NCBI GenBank assembly: GCA_965637545.1
Contig: OZ281500.1
Span: 1,364,001 to 1,428,000 of the forward strand
Direction: 5' to 3'
Length of the DNA: 64,000 bases
Source of the DNA: Phallusia mammillata
Taxonomy: Eukaryota
Shown here one piece after another: positions 27,401 through 37,018 of the stretch. Positions within the stretch are counted from its first letter, which is position 1. Every line of letters starts with the position of its first letter. The notes beneath the pieces were generated by a model. That model saw only the letters and a program-made list of their open reading frames with translations, did not search any database and had not been told where the DNA came from. A program made the position numbers and the translations under genes.

Positions 27401-28427
27401 CAAATTTTGTTGATAAAAGTCTATTTGGCAGGTGATATGATTAAGTAGAAATATCAGATTGCATTTTAACATAATAACATACGCAGGTGGTGTAACCGTT
27501 TTAATTAATATTTGTATATTTTTAATCAATATTAATATTGATCACGTTATAACAAACCTTATGATCATAAAAAATAAAGTCATAAAGTAACTCAATACCT
27601 CAGCATATGTACCAAGCACATCCAAATCATCACATAAAATTTCGTATTTGTTTTTTTCATTCTGGATTGACTGTTGTATTTTTCCCCTTACACTAATTGA
27701 TGTACCAAACTGCACCCTCCTAAAATCAGGAAGTCATAATGAAAATAAGAATGTTGTAAAGGTTACTATAAAATAGGGTCTTGTTTTTTGTGTGTGTTTT
27801 GCATTTTGTTGCTTTATAAGAAATTTGTCCTGCAAGATATGTCATTATCCTGATGAAGGCATCTTGTATAGGACGTCGAAATGTTGATTGTTTACAAAAA
27901 AACTGCTGGATGAGCAACACTTGGTTATACATTATGCCTAGCAGCAATAGCCTATATTATGGTCTTGTCAAGTTACAACTAAATTTTGCAATTAAATAAA
28001 TACTTCAAGTGTATTTAAATGCAAAGAAACACATAAAATTTCAGTAATTAGAAGAAAACATTGCAGTATTTGTAATTTACAAACCTGTCAAACAAATCTT
28101 TACTCATGACAAGTTGAATATTTTGTGCAGTAGATCCATCATTGATATCAACAAATACATGGTTTTTCATTTTCCTTACAGATCGAGTCCATCCCTAAAA
28201 TCAAACCAAATTTTATTCTTAACAATTTAGTTACACTACCTACACACACTACAGTTTCTAAACTAACACAGATGAAAAATATTAATTACAAGTACCTGTA
28301 CGTCAGCAGATTCGTTGTTTTTTCGCCCCTTGAGTATGTCTTTAATTCTAACTTTCTTGTAACTTTGAGAACGGAAATTTCTCGCACAATAAAACGCATG
28401 TTTCTTTACAAACATTAAACTAGACAT
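24499..28427 (-). CDS. NARS2: Mitochondrial asparaginyl-tRNA synthetase; 8 exons: 28296-28427, 28085-28194, 27599-27719, 27153-27293, 26095-26394, 25699-25853, 25099-25300, 24499-24768 (476 aa)
   Basis: Basic presequence, OB-fold GWTRSVRK...VDINDGS, class II motifs FLSVSGQLHLE, FRSEKSHTRKHLNEFRMLEAE, ELCGGSLRE, PHAGYGMGFDR; 1431 nt in frame. Confidence 0.95.
24832..25061. mobile_element. hAT-type MITE in last NARS2 intron
   Basis: TSD CTCTGTTA/CTCTATTA; homologous to 11036-11238. Confidence 0.8.
27770..27960 (+). mobile_element. Hammerhead-bearing repeat family A (Penelope-LTR-like), degenerate copy; ribozyme motif 27844-27891
   Basis: CTGATGAA-GGCATCTT gtat AGGACGTC-GAAATGTT-GATTG; flanks shared with copies at 31346, 47341 and 52000. 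Confidence 0.7.
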
Positions 28428-28908
28428 TCTTATGTTATTTTGTCTACTCCGACGCCATAAAACCTACAAATTGATATGTGAAAACACTTGATAAAGTCAA
28501 GTGAAACGTACGCAGACACTTTTTTGCATTTCACGACATAAACATTCATTTTGCAAAAACATTCATTTTTCGTGGGGAAAGACAACTATTCGTGGGTTTT
28601 CGACTATTTTTGCCTGTAGTTTGTTGCTGCTTTAACGTCTGGGGCGACAAAATACACAAAAGTTGTGAAAAAAAATTGGCAGAAACAACGTTTATTGGCA
28701 AAAAAAAGCGCAGGAAAAAACAAAAATGTCTGTTTGTTAGTTTTGCTATGCATGGATGGCCACGACGCACATGTATAGTCACGTGAACGCACTGAAGCGA
28801 ACAAAAAGGGAACTGCAGTTTCTGCGTCAGGTAAACAGAAAAATCGTTTTTTTGTCACGTTTATGATCATCGTGTTTGTTTGGTATCTAATTTGATGGTT
28901 TTCAACAA

Positions 28909-31900
28909 ATGTTTCGAACATTTCAACATATTAGATTCCTCAGCAAAAGATTTATTAGCCCCCAAATAAAGTCTACATCTCAAGAACGAGCTACGTGTTT
29001 GAACTATCAAAAGCCGACGTTTGTCCGACTATTTTGCACCGTAATGGACATTGAATCTATGAAGGTATTGTTTGTGAAATCATTTTTATGTGTACCTTTA
29101 AATCTTGTTTATCAGTGGAGGTATAGTCTACTTAGAAGAATAAACTACCTTTTTGTTATTAAATATCTAATAAAAAAACACTATATACTTCATGTTTTTA
29201 TGTTCTGTGATTATTTGAATGGATGTAAGGCATTAATAAGTATGATGTACATAATATATTCAGGTTGTGGAACTTCGTGCTTACCTAAAGTCGAAAAACC
29301 TTTCAACAAAAGGCAACAAAGAAGAATTGCAATTGAGGGCAGTGTCATTTGCCAGCGATAAAAGTCAGACAGAAGATGCTTCTTGTAATTATAAATTGTT
29401 TTCATGACTTGTTCAGTTTGGAGAGCACACGCCAGTCGGTTTTGAACTTGCAAAATAATCGGTGGTAGGATTCAAATTTTTTATCAGCAGGTTCTATCAC
29501 AAATATCATATTTTTCAGCCGGTTCTGTTACAAAAATGCCATTGACAGTATCCAGTAATGCTAACCGGTTTGCTGATCTCATAAAATTTCGTAAAACGGT
29601 TCTATAGAACCGGTGCGAACCAGCTGAATCCCACCACTGGATACACCATAGCATTTATTAAACCTATGGGTTTTTTTTAATTACCGAATTGTTTCATTTG
29701 GGTATAACATTTGCTATGGACAGTAGACAGAAAGGTAATCTACCAAAGTTTGTAATAACTCACTGGTTTGTGCTCTCTTAGTGGACAGGAATGACAACAG
29801 TGAAAATGCAATGAGCGTTGCTTCTGAAATTCCTGAAACAGCGAGCAAGGAGCCAGAAATTTCCGCAGAAAACTTAAACCCTGTAAAAGAGGCCATAGAC
29901 ACCAACAATGGCAACTTTATTAAACCTGAAGGTTTGTTTTAAAAGAAGTATTAAAAAGGACAAACATGGGAATTAAAATATATATATCACCAGTTGCAGA
30001 TGTTGAAATGTCAGAATTTGAGAATGAAAGGAAACGAAAAGGTGACGATTTTTATCCAGGACAGAAGAAAGTAGCAAAATGGTTGCCAAACACAAAATCA
30101 CCTCTTATGCTACTGAATGAAATGAAACCAGGTAAAACTTTGCATTTTTACTGCTTTTACATAAAATGTTGCTTGCAAGTTTGTAACTCAAACCTAATGT
30201 TGGCAAAATTCATATTACAGCAATTTCCAACATATACAAGAGGCAGAAAAATGTAGTTAAATCTATTTAAATTTTATTATGTACAGTGTATGTTGTCTTG
30301 TTAACCGTTTTTTTTTTCATCAAATGGTCTTAACTGTAAGGTTACCGTGGTTGCAGGTACAACAATCAGAGTTTCAGCTATTTCGAGCCCTGGAAACAAT
30401 CCTCGGTTTAAGGCAACAGCAGAAGTGAATGGGCAACAATTCTGTGCTGAGGGAAACAACAAGAAAGAAGCAAAGCAAACCCTAGCTGCACTTATACTAC
30501 AGTAAGATATAATGTACCACTATGTGGTCTGTGTGAAAGGCATACCTCCAGTGGTGGGATTCAAATATTTTGTCACTCTGTTCTATCACAAAATATTTTT
30601 CAGCTGGTTCTGTTACAAAACGTCCATTGACAGTAACCAGTAATGCTAACCGGTTCGCTGATCTCATAAAATTTCGTGAGACAGCTCTGTAGAACTGGTG
30701 CGAACCGACTGAATCCCACCACTGCATACATCCCATTTGTTTTTTTGAAAAACTCTTATTGATGTATTTGCCAAATTGGAACAAAATAAATACCAAATGA
30801 GTCATCAGTTTAGCATTTATTTTGCAAGTTGATTTTATTAGCCTGACTCAATGACATGAAACACAATATAGCTCCTGCTGCTTGCCAAAACTTTTTATTC
30901 CATTTACCAAATCTATAAATATTTGGCACCAATGCTCTTCACGTCTTGATCCCAATTTTTTCTACACAGGGAGTTACATTACCAGTTTGCTTCTCCTGTA
31001 ATTCCGTTTTACAATCCCAGTCCAATTGACTTCACTTCTGACGACATCGAATTTCCAATCATGCCACAGGTTAATTTTATTGCTTCTGTTGTTTTTGAAC
31101 TTAGATTCGTTTTTGCAAGTTACACAGAATTTCTATTAATTCCAGCCTCGACTATATTCATCTGGACCAACTTCACCAGTGATGTTTGACTCTTCTCCTC
31201 CTGCTCCTCTCACTCCTCCCCCACCTCCTCCTCCTTTTGTTGCTATGGAAACTAGCACTTCTCCAAAACCAAAGAAAAAATCAGTCAATACAGCTGAGGG
31301 TGAGTGCTGGTTTAAAATCTTAACACCAAATATGTTTGTTTTACCATTATCGTGATAAAGGTGTCTTGCATGAGACGTCGAAATGTCGATTGTATAATAA
31401 AACTGCCGAAAGAGCAACACTTGTCTATGTATTTGTTCTACTTAAATTGTCTCTTCTTTGTATGTAAAAAGTCCCCGTCCAAAGGTCTGCATTTAATTAA
31501 GATGATTAACACTTCACTATTGTTTTAAAGCTAAAAATAGCAGCAATTTATTGTTGTGTTCAGGCAGGAATCCAGTCTCTGTGTTGAACGAAATGCTGCC
31601 CGGCATACCGTTCAAATGCATTGAAGAAGTTGGGATAAAGCAGGAAAAAACTTTTACAATGGAAGTAGAAGTTAATGGAAAAAAATATCAGGGTTATGGC
31701 AAAAACAAAGTAGGTTAATTAGAAATAATAACATTTTCTGGTCATTAACTTGGATTGTTTTCAGAAACTTGCCAAACTCGGTGTTGCTACAAAAGTTTTG
31801 CAAGAAGAGTTTGGCGTTTCAACACAAGCAGGCGATCAGAGGAGTGTATCAAGCAACATGATCACTGATGTTTGTGTTGAGGAAAGTGCTGGGGTAAGGC

Positions 31901-34900
31901 CATAACTTCACCAATTTCACCAAAAACATCAAGTTTATAGAGCTCTGCTGGCAAATGTATCTTTGTATAAAATACATTTGCCAGAACAGTTCTATAAACT
32001 TGATATTATGCCGGCAGCAATAGCTTATATATCACCAAAACCATGTTAAGTTGTGAAGCTATCAAATTTTGTGTGTATTTTCAGAACTTGCCAGATTTGG
32101 TTTACAGTCTTGTGAGGGAGAAATTTTCAGATTTGACCAACAATTTTTCATCTGAATTTTCCAAACACAAAGTCCTAGCTGGTATTGTTATGACAAGAGA
32201 AAATGGTTAGTCCAAATTTTTTTTTGTAAACTGAGTGAAAATAGAGTTGCTCTGCATTCTATGCAAGTGAACTGGTAAGTTTGTGAACACCTATTTTGTA
32301 AAAGTTTTATTTTTTCAAGTTCGACAAATATAAATGCTATACACAGGATCTGTCCCTCTAACAGTAGGCATGTTAATGCCATAGATCACTGAGTCAAAAC
32401 TGTTTCAATAAATGATTAATTAAGAAGCAAATGCATCTGACTCAAAATCAGTAGACATATGCTTGCATAGGTGAAATATATATCTCGTTTTTAACAACCT
32501 TGTGTCTACTGATTTTGAGTCAGAAGCATTTGATTCCTCATTATCAAGTTAGACAACCCTTTATTCTTGCTTTGTTTTGTTGCAGGTCCAAATGTCACAG
32601 ATGGGGAGGTAATATCAGTTGCGACTGGAACAAAGTGTGTCAAGGGTGAATTCATATCCAATCAGGTTTGAAACAATCTCTGTTGGCTGTTTATAATTTA
32701 CTCACATCCAATTTACAATCATCTTCTTTGCAAGGGTGCTGCATTGTTCGATTGTCATGCTGAAATTGTCTCCCGTCGTGGTTTTCGAAGATTTATGTAC
32801 CAGCAGTTAATTGAATATGAAAAGTAAGAACAATGCAATTGTGGCAACACCCACCATAACACAAGTAAATAGGGACAGCCATAGCAAGCATTGGTTTTGT
32901 GGCATATATTTTGATATTTTTTAAGTGTTTCTGTGTAAAATCACAAAGTAAAAACTTTGTGATTAGTAAATTTTATGTATATTTATTTCCAACTTTATCT
33001 GTGGGACTGCTTTTGGAAACAAATGAGATGAGGTATATGTATTTTGAAGAAATGAGGTATATGTTGTTGAGCACACTTACAGAGTCCAATTCTTAAAAAA
33101 CTATTTTTGCAGCACACTATGAAAACTCTCATGGCACGTTACTGAATCGCAGTACAGAAAAATATATATTTGTGCATTGAAATATGTAATGGAAACATTT
33201 AGAACTGTTATTAAAGTTTATTAGTCAACTTACACTTTGTGTAGAAAGCAAATGCAGAGACAGTGAGAAGTTTAACGTTAGGTTGATTTCAGAAACAAAT
33301 CCACTTCTATTCTGGAGCACACTGGTTCTGGTCGATTCAAACTGAAGTCGGATGTGTTTTTTCATCTTTACATCAGCACATCACCTTGTGGAGATGCTAG
33401 GTTGTTCTCCCCACATGAGACAGAAGGTAAGGGACATTTTAATGAAAAAAAAATGAATGTTAGTTTTTATTGAAGTCAATTGTGTGTCAATGAAAAATCC
33501 AACATTAGTCGATGATTTTTAAGGTGTTAACACTTAACAGCAATATGAATTACCTTAAAAAGGGATTGTTTTGAGCATGTTGTTTTTCTTAAGTAGATTG
33601 TGTATAAGACTGATTTTACCCTTTTAGTTTTATTCTACCTTGTACTCTCGTGCCCTTGTTTTTAACATAATAGGAATTGTTTTTTATTGTTGATAACAAA
33701 ACTTGCTATAGATGTGTCTGTGAGAAAAACAATTTGTTGTTATTGTAGAGTCCAGTGATAATCATCCAAACCGAAGATCAAGAGGAAGACTACGAACTAA
33801 AATAGAGAACGGAGAAGGCACAATCCCAGTTGTGGATGAAGGGTTTGTTAAAGAACACGGTCGAAGCAATGTTCAGCAAACATGGGATGGAATTATTAGC
33901 GGAGAACGACTTCTTACGATGTCATGCAGCGACAAAATAGCAAAGTATACTTGGTTTAACACTTGATAATGTAAATCTCAAAATATTGAACAACTAAAAA
34001 TATAGTTTAAAAAGTATTAAATGGGAATAGTTTAGTGCAGACTTGAATAACAAAAATAAAAAGTGTTTGCAAAACTTAAAAATCACTGCCTTGTTTGGAG
34101 ATAGATATGATAAAGCGTGATTCTTCCAATAAACTGAAGTGCTGTTAGGCTACATTGGTCAATACGGCCCAGTTCCTGACAATAGCTGCACTGATGAGAC
34201 ATTGTAGGTTGAAACAGTATGCACTGTCTTCAGGTTACTCATCATTTATTGGCTTAAAGCAGATATGATATAATTAAACAATCAGTAAGTCCCTTTCCAA
34301 TATCCAACATAAACTATAGTGGTACAAGAATAAAACTCCCTTATATAAGCAAGTAGTGTTATTATGAACCAATGCTTCACAAGATCCTTTAGGACAGGGG
34401 TTCTTAAACTTTTTCAGTTGTGTCCCCCTTTACACTGTTTATTTATTCTCACGCCCCCTCCCTAAAAATGTTAGCACTGATGATGCTTGTCTTGTTTTTT
34501 GTAAACAACATACATCGTATGTCCGCTTTAAGCTACTGTCAAGTTAGTTCCAATCGTTAGAAAAAGCCACTTCAACGCGGATAAGTTGCGAAAAAAGCGC
34601 GTGCACAGAGCCACGGTGCCAGTATTCTTGTAAACTACGCATATGTCGCCCAGAAATTGTTGATGCACTAAAAGTCAATCTCCGATGCGAAATTAAGAAC
34701 AAATAAAGAATGTACAGCCGACTATATAGTACAGGGGTCACCAAACTACGGCCCGCGATCCCATTTTTTAGGTTTGCCAAAACGTATTGATGACTTTGTT
34801 ACTGTCAAAAATTAATCTACTCCTTACGAAAGTTTACTGCTACGACATGTAAAATTAATATTACCGACTTTCATAGGATTGCAACGCCCAGGATTGATCC

Positions 34901-37018
34901 AAAGCCAGTTTATTACGTCACAGACAAAACAAAAAGTGTTAATTGTGCGCAAACAATTGCCTTATTTTGTTACTTGTGACGTAATATACAAACATGCCTT
35001 GTAAGATGAGACTAACTATAAAATTTAACAGATTTTAAATGGGTTTTTAAAAAGACCATATCTTGGCACCCCTATAAAAATCGCCTCGTGGGCTAAGTTT
35101 GAGAAGAGGGCACTAGGGCATGTAAAGTCCGCAGTGGAAAAAAGTTTGGTTAGTACAACTGGACATCCATTTCAGAGCAATGAAATGTTTACTTTAAACA
35201 ATAAGTTCGAAATTAGCGCCGACATAATTCCAATACATTCATTTACAATTGTTTGCAAGTGAAAACTTTGCAGCCAGATTGTGCTGCGCCCCCCTTGCGA
35301 ACCCTTCACGCCCCCCTAATTTTCATAGAAAATAACTTGTGCATCCCATGGCAGTTAAAGTCCAGGTTTACTTTTTATTGTAGCAGGGGTTTGACTTGTA
35401 ATTGTTAAAACAAGACAAAAGAAGGACTGAAATGAAAAACAAGGACATTCCTTAAAAAAAGGATTTGAATTTTTCTAAGACATTGCCCTTCAGAATAGGG
35501 ACAAATCTTAGAAATAAGAATGGTATGGCAACCCTGTTTAGGGCAGACACAACAAGAAATGCCATGTCTTTTTTCCAGGTGGAATGTCGTTGGAATTCAA
35601 GGTTCTTTACTGAGTTTGTTTATTGAGCCAGTCTATCTATCTAGCATCATGCTTGGGTCTCTGTATCACGCCCAGCACCTTGAAAGGGGGGTGTTTTCTC
35701 GAGCAAGTGACGCAATGAGGGCAGCACTACAAGAAACTGACGACATGGACAAATTATTTCCTCAAAACTACAGAATGCACCGGCCACTGCTAGCGTCAGT
35801 CAGCAGCTCAGGTTGGACTTTCATAATCTATGTTTCAAATTTATAAATTCGTTTTTATCACTAGTTAATGTTTACAATCCAGTTAGGTTGCCTAGTGTAA
35901 AATTCTTCAAACAATATCGCAGAGTAACTGGAAATTTTCGTCAAACAAATACCTTTCAAAGTGAAAAGTCAGAAGCAACTTAGTTTAAAAAAAGAACAAA
36001 AACAGTCACACCTTGTATTTAAAAATGTTCAAAAAATGTTATTTCACAACAGGAAGGCGGATGGCAAAAAAGGCACCAAACTTATGTTTTCACTGGACAT
36101 CCGGGGATCCAACTCATAGTATTATCAACACTGGCACTGGTAAGGCTCTTAACACACTCATTACCACCATTATATTGATGGCAATAACATGTTCAATGCT
36201 TATCAAGGTCGAGCAGATGATGGCGCGTCCTCCAATCTGTGTAAGAAGGAAATGATGAAAATGTTCATGGATGTGTGTGTGAATAACTCGTCAATTGTGA
36301 AACCTGATTCATTTGATCAAAAAACTTACGGGGAATTAAAAAACCTTGCAAGCGGTTATCAGGTGAAAATTTTTGCAAAATTATTTTTTTTAACTATTTC
36401 TGTTGTTTATTATGTTGGTGTGTTTCTTTTGTTTTCAAGTATGTTTTTTTGGTGGAGGTTTCTGGTACAAAAAAATACTTTACTGCTAAGGGCTGATTTC
36501 AAGAAAATCATATTATGGTATACATCAGTGGTTCTCAACCTTTTTAAATGTCAGGGCCAAATGGTAGTTTTTTAAATGTGTAAGGAGCCGCAAAAAACGA
36601 AACCTCAAAAAAACACTAAAGCTTATTACATTGAAAGCTAACATAGCAATCTTTGGTAGTTATTTTAGGTCTGGTGCGAACAGCAAAATAAGTAGTTGGA
36701 AGCCGCATGCGGCCCTGAGAGCCACGGTTGAGAATCACTGGTATACACAGTCAAGTCACATGAAGTACTAAATATTAGAAGCTGTAATATGCTTAACACA
36801 AAATCAATTCAAACACAGTCAAAATCAGTTCCAAACTCGTTCATGTTCACTGTTAAGTTGCGTTGCACATGGATTGTATGTTAAAGTTGATTCATCTTTA
36901 TCTTGTCAAACAGGAACTGAAGTACCAAGTCATGGGTGGTTTCACGAAAACCAACTGTGGAAGATGGATCGGTAAACCCAACGAGGTTGACATGTTTACT
37001 TACCAGCCCAAGAAATAA
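28909..37018 (+). CDS. ADARB1: ADAR2-type dsRNA adenosine deaminase (SAP + 2 dsRBD + deaminase); 18 coding exons: 28909(or 29044)-29064, 29264-29363, 29782-29931, 29994-30131, 30357-30501, 30970-31069, 31146-31299, 31564-31709, 31765-31893, 32085-32205, 32586-32665, 32735-32823, 33293-33426, 33749-33944, 35579-35811, 36053-36139, 36208-36362, 36914-37018
   Basis: dsRBD1 ([12 protein letters not shown]...GNNKKEAKQ), DFTSD linker, dsRBD2 ([11 protein letters not shown]...GKNKKLAK), deaminase motifs [39 protein letters not shown]-terminal [11 protein letters not shown]; phases consistent (2418 nt, 805 aa from the upstream ATG). Exon-2 donor GTCAGA is weak. Confidence 0.93.
29460..29639. mobile_element. 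~178-bp MITE, copy 2 (ADAR intron 2)
   Basis: Aligns end-to-end with 20228-20406. Confidence 0.8.
30549..30724. mobile_element. ~178-bp MITE, copy 3 (ADAR intron 5)
   Basis: TIR CAGTGGTGGGATTCA; TSD CATACCTC/CATACATC. Confidence 0.85.
31340..31430 (+). mobile_element. Family A copy with mutated ribozyme core (ADAR intron 7)
   Basis: ATTATC-GTGATAAA-GGTGTCTTGCATGAGACGTC-GAAATGTC-GATTG-TATAATAAAACTGC aligns to family A. Confidence 0.65.
34185..34234 (+). ncRNA. Type I hammerhead ribozyme with full helix III in ADAR intron 14
   Basis: GCTGCA-CTGATGA-GAC attgtag GTT-GAAA-CAGT atgc ACTG-TC^-TTCAGG; perfect ACAGT/ACTGT helix III; G10.1-U11.1 wobble and one mismatch in stem I. Confidence 0.65.
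34395..35320. mobile_element. Cluster of nested/truncated hAT MITE fragments in ADAR intron 14
   Basis: Left-end motifs CAGGGGTTCTTAAAC (34395) and CAGGGGTCACCAAAC (~34732) plus right-end-like GC blocks; ends not paired confidently. Confidence 0.45.
36526..36740. mobile_element. hAT-type MITE in last ADAR intron
   Basis: TIR CAGTG(G/A)TTCTCAACC; TSD GTATACAT/GTATACAC. Confidence 0.85.

Follow-up and report, generated by a model that had tools for sequence, protein, structure and literature searches.

An upstream in-frame AUG that would give ascidian ADAR a recurrent basic extension, a candidate mitochondrial presequence

Known N-terminal isoforms and the ascidian case

An upstream in-frame AUG that adds a mitochondrial presequence allows a single mRNA to supply two cellular locations, as in many tRNA synthetases and DNA- and RNA-processing enzymes. 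ADARs are viewed as nuclear and cytoplasmic enzymes, and human ADAR1 yields, through alternative promoters and starts, the p150 and p110 isoforms of different location. In the literature on ADAR and mitochondrial targeting we found no ADAR of the alternative-AUG mitochondrial design, and that on ADAR, SAP, mitochondrial targeting and Ciona returned neither a mitochondrial ADAR with a presequence nor a description of the extension reported here. The access of ADARs to mitochondrial RNA is a current question in the field; a 2026 study found that human mitochondrial preparations contain a small part of the ADAR1p150, and could identify no robust targeting sequence in it (PMC13171160). In vertebrate ADAR2R, ADAR2 is lengthened at its N-terminus by 49 residues that include an R-domain like that of ADAR3 (Maas & Gommans, 2009; PMC2626628). 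This extension is encoded in a separate exon 0 under an alternative promoter and contains a dense Arg cluster (PMC2626628). The survey in PMC9989829 included a single ADAR query from Ciona.

The ascidian ADAR described here resembles alternative-AUG dual targeting in having two in-frame AUGs in one exon and on one mRNA, a conserved internal Met, and an extension that is basic and acid-poor. In Phallusia mammillata, both AUGs lie on one mature mRNA, the first weak and the second strong with none between. The resemblance is incomplete: out-of-frame ATGs separate the two starts in Clavelina and Styela, uORFs lie upstream, and the ascidian presequence is a candidate from sequence. As in ADAR2R, an optional basic extension directly precedes the homologous start (MD-I/V-E/D), and the canonical start becomes an internal Met. 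In contrast to ADAR2R, the extension lies in the exon of the canonical start, has no Arg cluster in three of the four species (Ciona has RTRRKSR) and shares no sequence similarity with its vertebrate counterpart. As with p150 and p110, one ADAR gene would give isoforms that differ in N-terminus and, by prediction, in location, whereas the ascidian enzyme differs from ADAR1p150 in being ADAR2-type with a SAP domain and a candidate N-terminal signal, known from sequence alone.

The Phallusia gene, its leader and the two starts

The identification of the gene as ADAR in the original prediction was upheld by Pfam, which detects SAP, dsrm and A_deamin domains. In the public Phallusia mammillata protein P0001 these comprise SAP at residues 47-80 (E=9e-10; E=2e-8 on exon 2), two dsrm stretches, and A_deamin (E=4e-94). 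The best non-tunicate matches are ADARB1-like proteins. Judged by its domains (SAP, two dsRBDs, deaminase) and its grouping with ADAR2/ADARB1 in these matches and in a tree, the gene is an ADAR2-type RNA editase. The spliced model has GT/AG boundaries, differs from P0001 at 9 residues in 812, and has its first five exon junctions backed by RNA joints. Downstream of SAP, P0001 contains a basic cluster, RKRK...KKVAK, a possible (bipartite) nuclear signal. Positions are those of the window, that is, the whole 64-kb stretch of DNA that was analysed.

28909..37018, plus strand: whole ADAR coding region, 18 exons, 812 codons (long form), spliced model fitted to P0001
28799..29064, plus strand: ADAR exon 1, minimum extent in RNA, with the 5' leader, the extension and the first 7 codons of the short form
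28909..29043, plus strand: N-terminal extension, 45 codons from the first in-frame ATG, net charge +7, one acidic residue
29044..29046, plus strand: second in-frame ATG, strong context gtaATGg, its Met invariant in 5/5 tunicate orthologues
29047..29384, plus strand: SAP domain coding, end of exon 1 plus exon 2 (29264-29384), split by intron 1 (29065-29263)

The sequence confirms that ATG 28909 opens 45 codons in frame with ATG 29044, and that no ATG, in any of the frames, occurs between them. The frame is closed by a stop just 5' of ATG 28909, at 28888-28890. The start contexts are also as originally described, weak at 28909 (caaATGt) and strong at 29044, and so is the basic, acid-poor character of the peptide, with 8 K+R and a single acidic residue in 45. 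P0001 includes the extension as its residues 1-45, with one V/I difference. The 45 residues match no family in a Pfam search, lie outside the SAP fold and ahead of it, and are predicted by AlphaFold2, run on the first 100 residues, to be disordered and devoid of helix (pLDDT about 48).

The leader also holds two out-of-frame upstream ATGs (28863 and 28895) that had been missed earlier:

28863..28895, plus strand: uORF1, out of frame (context tttATGa), 10 codons, contained in each of the four RNA contigs
28895..28969, plus strand: uORF2, 24 codons, out of frame, context ttgATGg

The TGA stop of uORF1 overlaps the ATG of uORF2. From its start, 14 nt ahead of ATG 28909, uORF2 runs past that ATG and stops 75 nt short of ATG 29044. 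With these two ATGs ahead of it, use of 28909 may be low in Phallusia.

The original prediction had proposed that a 5' intron switches the extension on and off:

28831..28934, plus strand: proposed intron, 104 nt, GT and AG on the sequence, splicing not seen

The RNA evidence consists of assembled spliced contigs from four runs of four studies; such contigs cannot reveal transcript starts or rare isoforms, and rare variants are dropped in assembly. The ADAR contigs have 5' ends at 28799, 28836, 28838 and 28858, run colinear to 29062/29064 and are then joined to 29264 (GT..AG). Since these spliced contigs run unbroken through the leader to 29064, position 28909 belongs to the mature mRNA, contiguous with 29044 in contigs from all four studies. 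Removal of ATG 28909 by alternative splicing of the 104-nt leader intron is thus hardly to be credited: the GT at 28831, in a consensus-like donor (CAG/GTAAAC), and the TAG at 28932-28934, with its AG at 28933-28934, do exist, and a minor spliced form could have been lost from contigs that lose rare variants, but the interval is retained in every assembled contig. One contig (28799-29062) spans it whole and the three others start inside it and continue into exon 1. A 28830>28935 joint is absent from all four runs, while five neighbouring introns (four of ADAR, one of the NARS2-like neighbour) were all detected in the same RNA with GT..AG joints; moreover, Clavelina and Styela need no comparable intron. 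SL trans-splicing is frequent in ascidians, and it was considered at the AG of 28934 and rejected: the contigs reach upstream of this AG, and among the loose ends listed none at the ADAR 5' ends is spliced-leader-like.

Because the proposed intron is retained and both ATGs are on one mRNA, any choice between long and short ADAR is most likely made at translation initiation rather than by splicing. Ribosomes that pass the weak-context ATG 28909 would start at the strong ATG 29044, and those that have first translated the overlapping uORF (28895-28969) may also start there, in either case giving a SAP-first short form with RKRK...KKVAK as an internal basic cluster. A start at 28909 would instead place a disordered leader of positive charge at the N-terminus. 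This leader would most likely be a cleavable mitochondrial-type targeting peptide that directs the enzyme to a minor second location. Use of both starts seems probable to us, whereas the proposal as a whole (a selected extension, a choice at initiation and a cleavable mitochondrial-type leader) is held tentatively, at somewhat short of even likelihood.

Recurrence of the extension among tunicates

The second Met is preceded by 44 residues in Clavelina (P0153), 32 in Ciona intestinalis (P0154) and 45 in Styela (P0155), in each case before the same Met-x4/5-MKV start of SAP. In genomic DNA of Clavelina and Styela the extension lies in the same (first) exon as the second start. All four extensions begin M-[L/F], have a net charge of +5 to +8 and contain at most two acidic residues, the first of them at position 16-26. 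The second Met itself is invariant among variable neighbouring residues, which would be expected were both starts in use. This Met falls on the vertebrate ADAR2 start MD(V/I)(D/E) in alignment, and position -3 of its ATG is a purine in each of the four species for which DNA was available. A word search with residues 1-200 of P0001 returned only P0001 itself, the extensions being too diverged for shared words.

Conservation of the open frame, which had been suggested as a check, therefore holds for four ascidian species of three orders and fails in a fifth tunicate (L003), whose transcript lacks the extension and has the second Met as its sole start; stops in sister species, named beforehand as evidence against the extension, are thus found in one of five tunicates and not in the other four. 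In the tree L003 nests beside Styela, which has the extension, so the absence in L003 appears to reflect secondary loss or an alternative 5' end. Tunicate branch lengths in this tree are 0.6-1.2, and the non-coding DNA of the four extension-bearing species is not alignable.

Firstly, with regard to chance, an in-frame ATG extension of at least 45 codons arose in 1.6% of trials with dinucleotide-shuffled Phallusia leader, and 8% of random ATG-open 45-mers in the window, which is AT-rich DNA, have a basic, acid-poor composition. The caution that such a stretch can arise by chance is therefore justified for the Phallusia locus alone, which lies within the expectation of a genome-wide scan, and it does not extend to the four species together, whose data are far beyond chance. 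Extensions of at least 30 codons occurred in 3.4-4.1% of shuffled leaders per species, so that chance occurrence in four of five deeply diverged species would be of the order of 1e-5. It is these comparative data, and not the Phallusia locus alone, that carry the claim.

Secondly, the upstream ATG might act at the RNA or translation level only, upstream ATGs damping ADAR synthesis, or the frame might be a chance product of annotation, the peptide in either case being functionless. In favor of this are the three upstream ATGs in the leader, the single-locus chance (about 2% for the open frame and about 8% for the composition), the one tunicate without the extension, and the preference of gene predictors and ORF callers for the longest ORF. 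Two Clavelina assemblies bear on the same point: the 132 nt of the extension contain a single difference between them (F2L), against 12 in about 200 nt of upstream DNA and about 4 in 100 nt of intron 1, and the 5' UTR directly ahead of the extension, where about 80 nt show 1 difference, is conserved to the same degree. Within species, residue differences number 2 of 134 in the extension and 40 of 2330 in the rest, too few to separate coding from UTR constraint. Against a functionless peptide, four species whose non-coding DNA cannot be aligned have in common the continuous frame, comparable lengths (32-45) and one charge pattern, and neither frame nor composition is required of a purely regulatory upstream ATG. 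We regard it as a quite improbable reading, and the sequence comparisons indicate that the extension is very probably translated and under selection.

The leader does not have the same design throughout. The first ATG of Clavelina and that of Styela are preceded by G at -3, overlapping out-of-frame upstream ATGs comparable to that of uORF2 lie 5-29 nt ahead of them in genomic DNA, and three out-of-frame ATGs stand between the two starts in each species. Such intervening ATGs are at odds with a leader tuned to leaky scanning; they suggest that the long form is perhaps the main or only product in Clavelina and Styela.

Destination of the long form

By simple criteria, a mitochondrial presequence is a plausible reading of the extension. 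A presequence is N-terminal and about 15-60 residues long, and the ascidian extensions are 32-45 residues that precede the folded SAP domain. In all four species they have the charge and composition of a matrix presequence, being positive and acid-poor with hydroxylated and hydrophobic residues. The processing-peptidase cleavage motif has Arg at -2 or -3, and loose matches of this type (R-x-[FYLI]-[SAT]) are present in all four, the pattern being degenerate and its position not conserved. As to the potential for an amphipathic helix, the maximal hydrophobic moment is 0.38-0.58 per residue, which is not above that of shuffles of the same peptides (z 0.4-1.0).

It is also conceivable that the extension is a translated and conserved basic disordered arm with no mitochondrial role, nuclear or nucleolar, RNA-binding or regulatory, maybe constitutive in some species, and the counterpart of ADAR2R and of the ADAR3 R-domain. 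In the vertebrate ADAR2 proteins P0164, P0178 and P0180, the annotation likewise places a basic extension immediately ahead of the homologous MD(V/I)(D/E) start, and a 49-residue mammalian extension with an Arg-rich R-domain is known (PMC2626628). The RTRRKSR cluster of Ciona and the out-of-frame ATGs between the starts, which suggest a mainly long form in Clavelina and Styela, point in the same direction. However, the extensions of Phallusia, Clavelina and Styela lack a dense Arg/Lys cluster, and the ascidian and vertebrate extensions are not similar in sequence, the latter being the product of the separate exon 0. The arm may moreover be dispensable for nuclear import, RKRK...KKVAK lying after SAP, and the acid-poor mix of hydroxylated, hydrophobic and basic residues with its M-L/F start suits presequences more than nuclear signals. 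We consider such an arm rather unlikely. A mitochondrial destination of the ascidian long form is possible, if on balance doubtful; the stricter statement that ascidians send part of their ADAR to mitochondria by a conserved cleavable presequence from an upstream in-frame AUG is, on the present sequence comparisons, unlikely.

If the mitochondrial reading is true, this ADAR would be the first to have an isoform dedicated to mitochondria, which would in turn imply that A-to-I editing or the handling of dsRNA takes place within the mitochondria of animals. A conserved second start combined with an extension that resembles a presequence and has persisted for hundreds of millions of years would offer a clean, genetically tractable test case, and embryos of Ciona and Phallusia readily take reporter constructs. 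If the extension is not mitochondrial, tunicate and vertebrate ADAR2-type enzymes would both keep an optional basic N-terminal arm before the same ancestral start codon.

As originally described, ADAR stands head-to-head with another gene, the outermost contig ends of the two being about 310 bp apart, with no RNA covering the gap:

28295..28487, minus strand: first exon of the divergent neighbour, with a basic N-terminus from ATG 28427; its RNA contigs extend to 28463-28487 and show the joint 28295>28193

We take this neighbour to be NARS2, the label it had been given; its exon 2 has a match to the OB-fold anticodon-binding family PF01336 that is sub-threshold (17.7 bits against a cut-off of 27). 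The adjacency had been offered as a mitochondrial clue, and it was dropped since it is absent in Clavelina and Styela, where ADAR has other upstream neighbours. In charge and composition, the ascidian extensions equal or exceed the basic N-terminus of this neighbour, whose own status as a presequence rests on the NARS2 label.

Two in-frame starts in the ADAR messenger RNA

In this analysis, we find that exon 1 of ADAR holds an ATG in a weak context (caaATGt) at 28909, which adds 45 codons ahead of a second in-frame ATG in a strong context (gtaATGg) at 29044, with no ATG in any frame between the two. The original prediction had noticed this arrangement, and the sequence confirms it except for the intron discussed below. 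An in-frame TAA (28888-28890) shuts the extension frame just 5′ of ATG 28909. Moreover, the leader contains two out-of-frame ATGs, at 28863 and 28895, which the original prediction overlooked.

Features of the ADAR gene in the window
28863 (ATG), + strand: out-of-frame upstream ORF (uORF) of 10 codons, from a sequence scan of the leader
28895-28969, + strand: out-of-frame uORF of 24 codons overlapping ATG 28909, from the same scan
From ATG 28909 in frame into ATG 29044, + strand: N-terminal extension of 45 codons, by translation
28909-37018, + strand: ADAR coding region, 18 exons and 812 residues, spliced model

The encoded protein has a SAP domain (residues 47-80), two dsRNA-binding motifs and a deaminase domain (Pfam A_deamin, E = 4e-94). 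The linker joining the two dsRNA-binding domains carries a proline run in exon 7 (31146-31299).

The ADAR region is contained in 20 public sequencing runs, 14 of which hold just about one third of a 3-kb stretch, the pattern expected of exon-only RNA. Contigs from four runs of four studies were mapped onto 27900-30500. In all four, the ADAR introns appear as GT..AG joints (29064>29264, 29384>29782, 29931>29994 and 30131>30357) and 28488-28798 has no contig cover, indicating that these contigs are RNA assemblies. The ADAR contigs begin at 28799, 28836, 28838 and 28858 and are each continuous to the end of exon 1; therefore ATG 28909 and both uORFs are present in the mature mRNA of all four runs, as the proposed search for transcripts retaining 28909 had sought. 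Every assembled form keeps the 5′ intron (28831-28934) that was thought to switch the extension, and none of the four runs shows a joint for it. No spliced-leader-like sequence was found among the loose ends listed at the ADAR contig 5′ ends. Since assembled contigs do not mark true transcript starts and lose rare variants, a minor class of transcripts may start farther downstream, and rare splicing may occur; a switch between long and short forms, if any, would most likely be translational.

Conservation of the extension among ascidians

The caveat that a 45-codon open stretch can be accidental is well founded. When the 245-nt leader is shuffled with its dinucleotides kept, an in-frame ATG extension of at least 45 codons arises in 1.6% of cases and an open stretch of at least 51 codons in 5.5%. 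Of the 161 ATG-started open 45-mers of the window (six frames), 8% carry a net charge of +7 or more and no more than one acidic residue, so one such locus would be unremarkable in a genome-wide scan.

A deaminase-exon query against protein representatives returned P0001, a P. mammillata protein of 812 residues (CAB3220008.1) annotated as "double-stranded RNA-specific editase 1-like", which also has the extension at its N-terminus; it departs from the window model at nine of 812 positions, including one within the extension (V45I). The extension is thus already in public protein records, uncommented. The next full-length matches were three other ascidians.

Extensions in other ascidians
Clavelina lepadiformis, P0153: 44 residues
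Ciona intestinalis, P0154/P0007: 32 residues
Styela clava, P0155/P0008: 45 residues

In these three proteins a Met-x(4-5)-MKV SAP start follows the extension, and genomic DNA of Clavelina (L001) and Styela (L002) places it within the same first exon, with the intron after the same "MK" codons. The four ascidian extensions are almost unalignable to each other; they share an M-[L/F] start, a net charge of +5 to +8 and at most two acidic residues, none before position 16. Because shuffling yields an extension of at least 30 codons in only 3.4-4.1% of trials per species, and the species are deeply diverged in the tree (0.4-1.2 changes per site on the terminal branches), its presence in four of five independent lineages has a chance expectation of about 1e-5.

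The fifth tunicate protein (P0157, encoded by the Logan RNA contig L003 of a stolidobranch), sister to Styela in the tree, has no extension: an in-frame stop lies 12 codons 5′ of MEFDHMKV, and the 112 nt of leader in the contig contain no in-frame ATG ahead of it. Positions 1-21 of L003 (…AGATGTGTATAAGAGACAG) are presumably a Nextera transposase adapter remnant, so that its 5′ end is a library artefact and no transcript start. We take the missing extension to reflect either a secondary loss or an alternative 5′ end. The expected conservation in related species is thus borne out in Clavelina, Ciona and Styela and fails in L003. Taken together, the comparisons indicate that the extension is a genuine, conserved trait of ascidian ADAR, and an upstream ATG that is accidental or serves regulation alone has become improbable.

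Between two Clavelina assemblies, the extension shows a single substitution in 132 nt (TTT>TTA, F2L). Farther upstream there are 12 differences in about 200 nt, and intron 1 has about 4 in 100 nt together with a 13-nt indel. The presumed 5′ UTR is conserved to the same degree as the extension over the last 80 nt before the first ATG, which points to exon-level rather than specifically coding constraint. Conspecific residue differences occur at the same rate in the extension (2/134) and the rest (40/2330), a comparison of little statistical power.

Nature and destination of the extension

The extension lies outside the SAP domain, has no Pfam family match, and is modelled by AlphaFold2 as disordered (pLDDT about 48) beside a confident SAP (87-89). 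By simple criteria, it equals or exceeds in presequence likeness the N-terminus of the neighbouring gene labelled NARS2 in the original prediction. Cleavage motifs are loosely matched in the extensions, and their hydrophobic moment is no higher than in shuffles of the same peptides. Of the four extensions, only that of Ciona has a dense Arg/Lys cluster like those of nuclear signals or R-domains (RTRRKSR), and the shared protein body has its own basic cluster after SAP (RKRK...KKVAK), possibly a bipartite nuclear signal; together these weakly favour an organelle-type over a nuclear signal. From the peptide properties, a mitochondrial destination may tentatively be taken as the best single reading. 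Its main rival, a conserved basic arm with a non-mitochondrial role, seems only slightly less likely.

The head-to-head layout invoked for mitochondrial function is real: the divergent, putative NARS2 gene lies on the opposite strand (ATG 28427, basic N-terminus), and the outermost RNA ends of the two genes are about 310 bp apart. In exon 2 of the divergent gene, an OB-fold anticodon-binding domain is matched weakly, below threshold. The layout is no clue to destination, since the protein encoded upstream of ADAR resembles UMP synthase in Clavelina and a sulfotransferase in Styela, which leaves the NARS2 neighbourhood without weight; ADAR synteny is not conserved among ascidians.

The closest described parallel is vertebrate ADAR2R, an ADAR2 isoform in which a separate exon 0 supplies a basic extension of 49 residues that includes an ADAR3-like R-domain (PMC2626628), whereas the ascidian extension shares the exon of the second start. 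Annotated non-human vertebrate ADARB1 proteins (P0164, P0178, P0180) have basic extensions ending in ...QQKYF(T/A) directly before MDVD, in agreement with that isoform; the canonical ADAR2 start is an internal Met in vertebrates and ascidians alike. Our literature search found neither an extension described for a SAP-ADAR nor an ADAR isoform of mitochondria. A metazoan editing survey was queried with a single Ciona ADAR, XP_002128212.1, identical to P0007 (PMC9989829). A 2026 study reported that human mitochondrial transcripts are edited at a low level and that mitochondrial preparations contain a small fraction of ADAR1p150, in which no targeting sequence could be detected (PMC13171160). Among the best 120 ADAR2-like matches, SAP (PF02037) occurs only in the five full-length tunicate proteins (P0001, P0153, P0154, P0155, P0157) and in no other animal's ADAR2; a partial Ciona savignyi protein is missing its N-terminus. 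SAP-ADAR looks like a tunicate innovation.

The second start and initiation choice

The Met encoded at 29044 is conserved in every one of the five tunicates, followed by 4-5 variable residues, and its ATG has a purine at −3 in the four species with DNA. Because it aligns with the MD(V/I)(D/E) start of vertebrate ADAR2 (P0164, P0178, P0180, P0196) and is the sole possible start in L003, ATG 29044 is the ancestral start, with the extension added 5′ of it. Retention of both Met codons is as dual initiation predicts. In Clavelina and Styela, three out-of-frame ATGs lie between the two starts and the first ATG has G at −3, which counts against a simple leaky-scanning design; there the long form may predominate. 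An out-of-frame ATG with an overlapping frame lies 5-29 nt 5′ of the first in-frame ATG in each of Phallusia, Clavelina and Styela.

Overlapping out-of-frame uORFs
Phallusia: window 28895-28969
Clavelina: L001 7972-8058
Styela: L002 7996-8007

Such a uORF could carry ribosomes beyond the first in-frame start, and it may be a conserved tuner of first-start use, or chance; we put the arrangement in three of three species at about 5% by chance, a rough estimate.

Two ADAR introns also carry copies of a MITE-like repeat, about 185 nt long, that has terminal inverted repeats (GTGGTGGGATTCA...TGAATCCCACCAC).

MITE-like repeat copies (83-89% identity)
Window 29462-29645
Window 30551-30730

RNA contigs cover its words 100-300 times as deeply as those of the ADAR exons and show many loose ends there, indicating a high-copy transcribed family.
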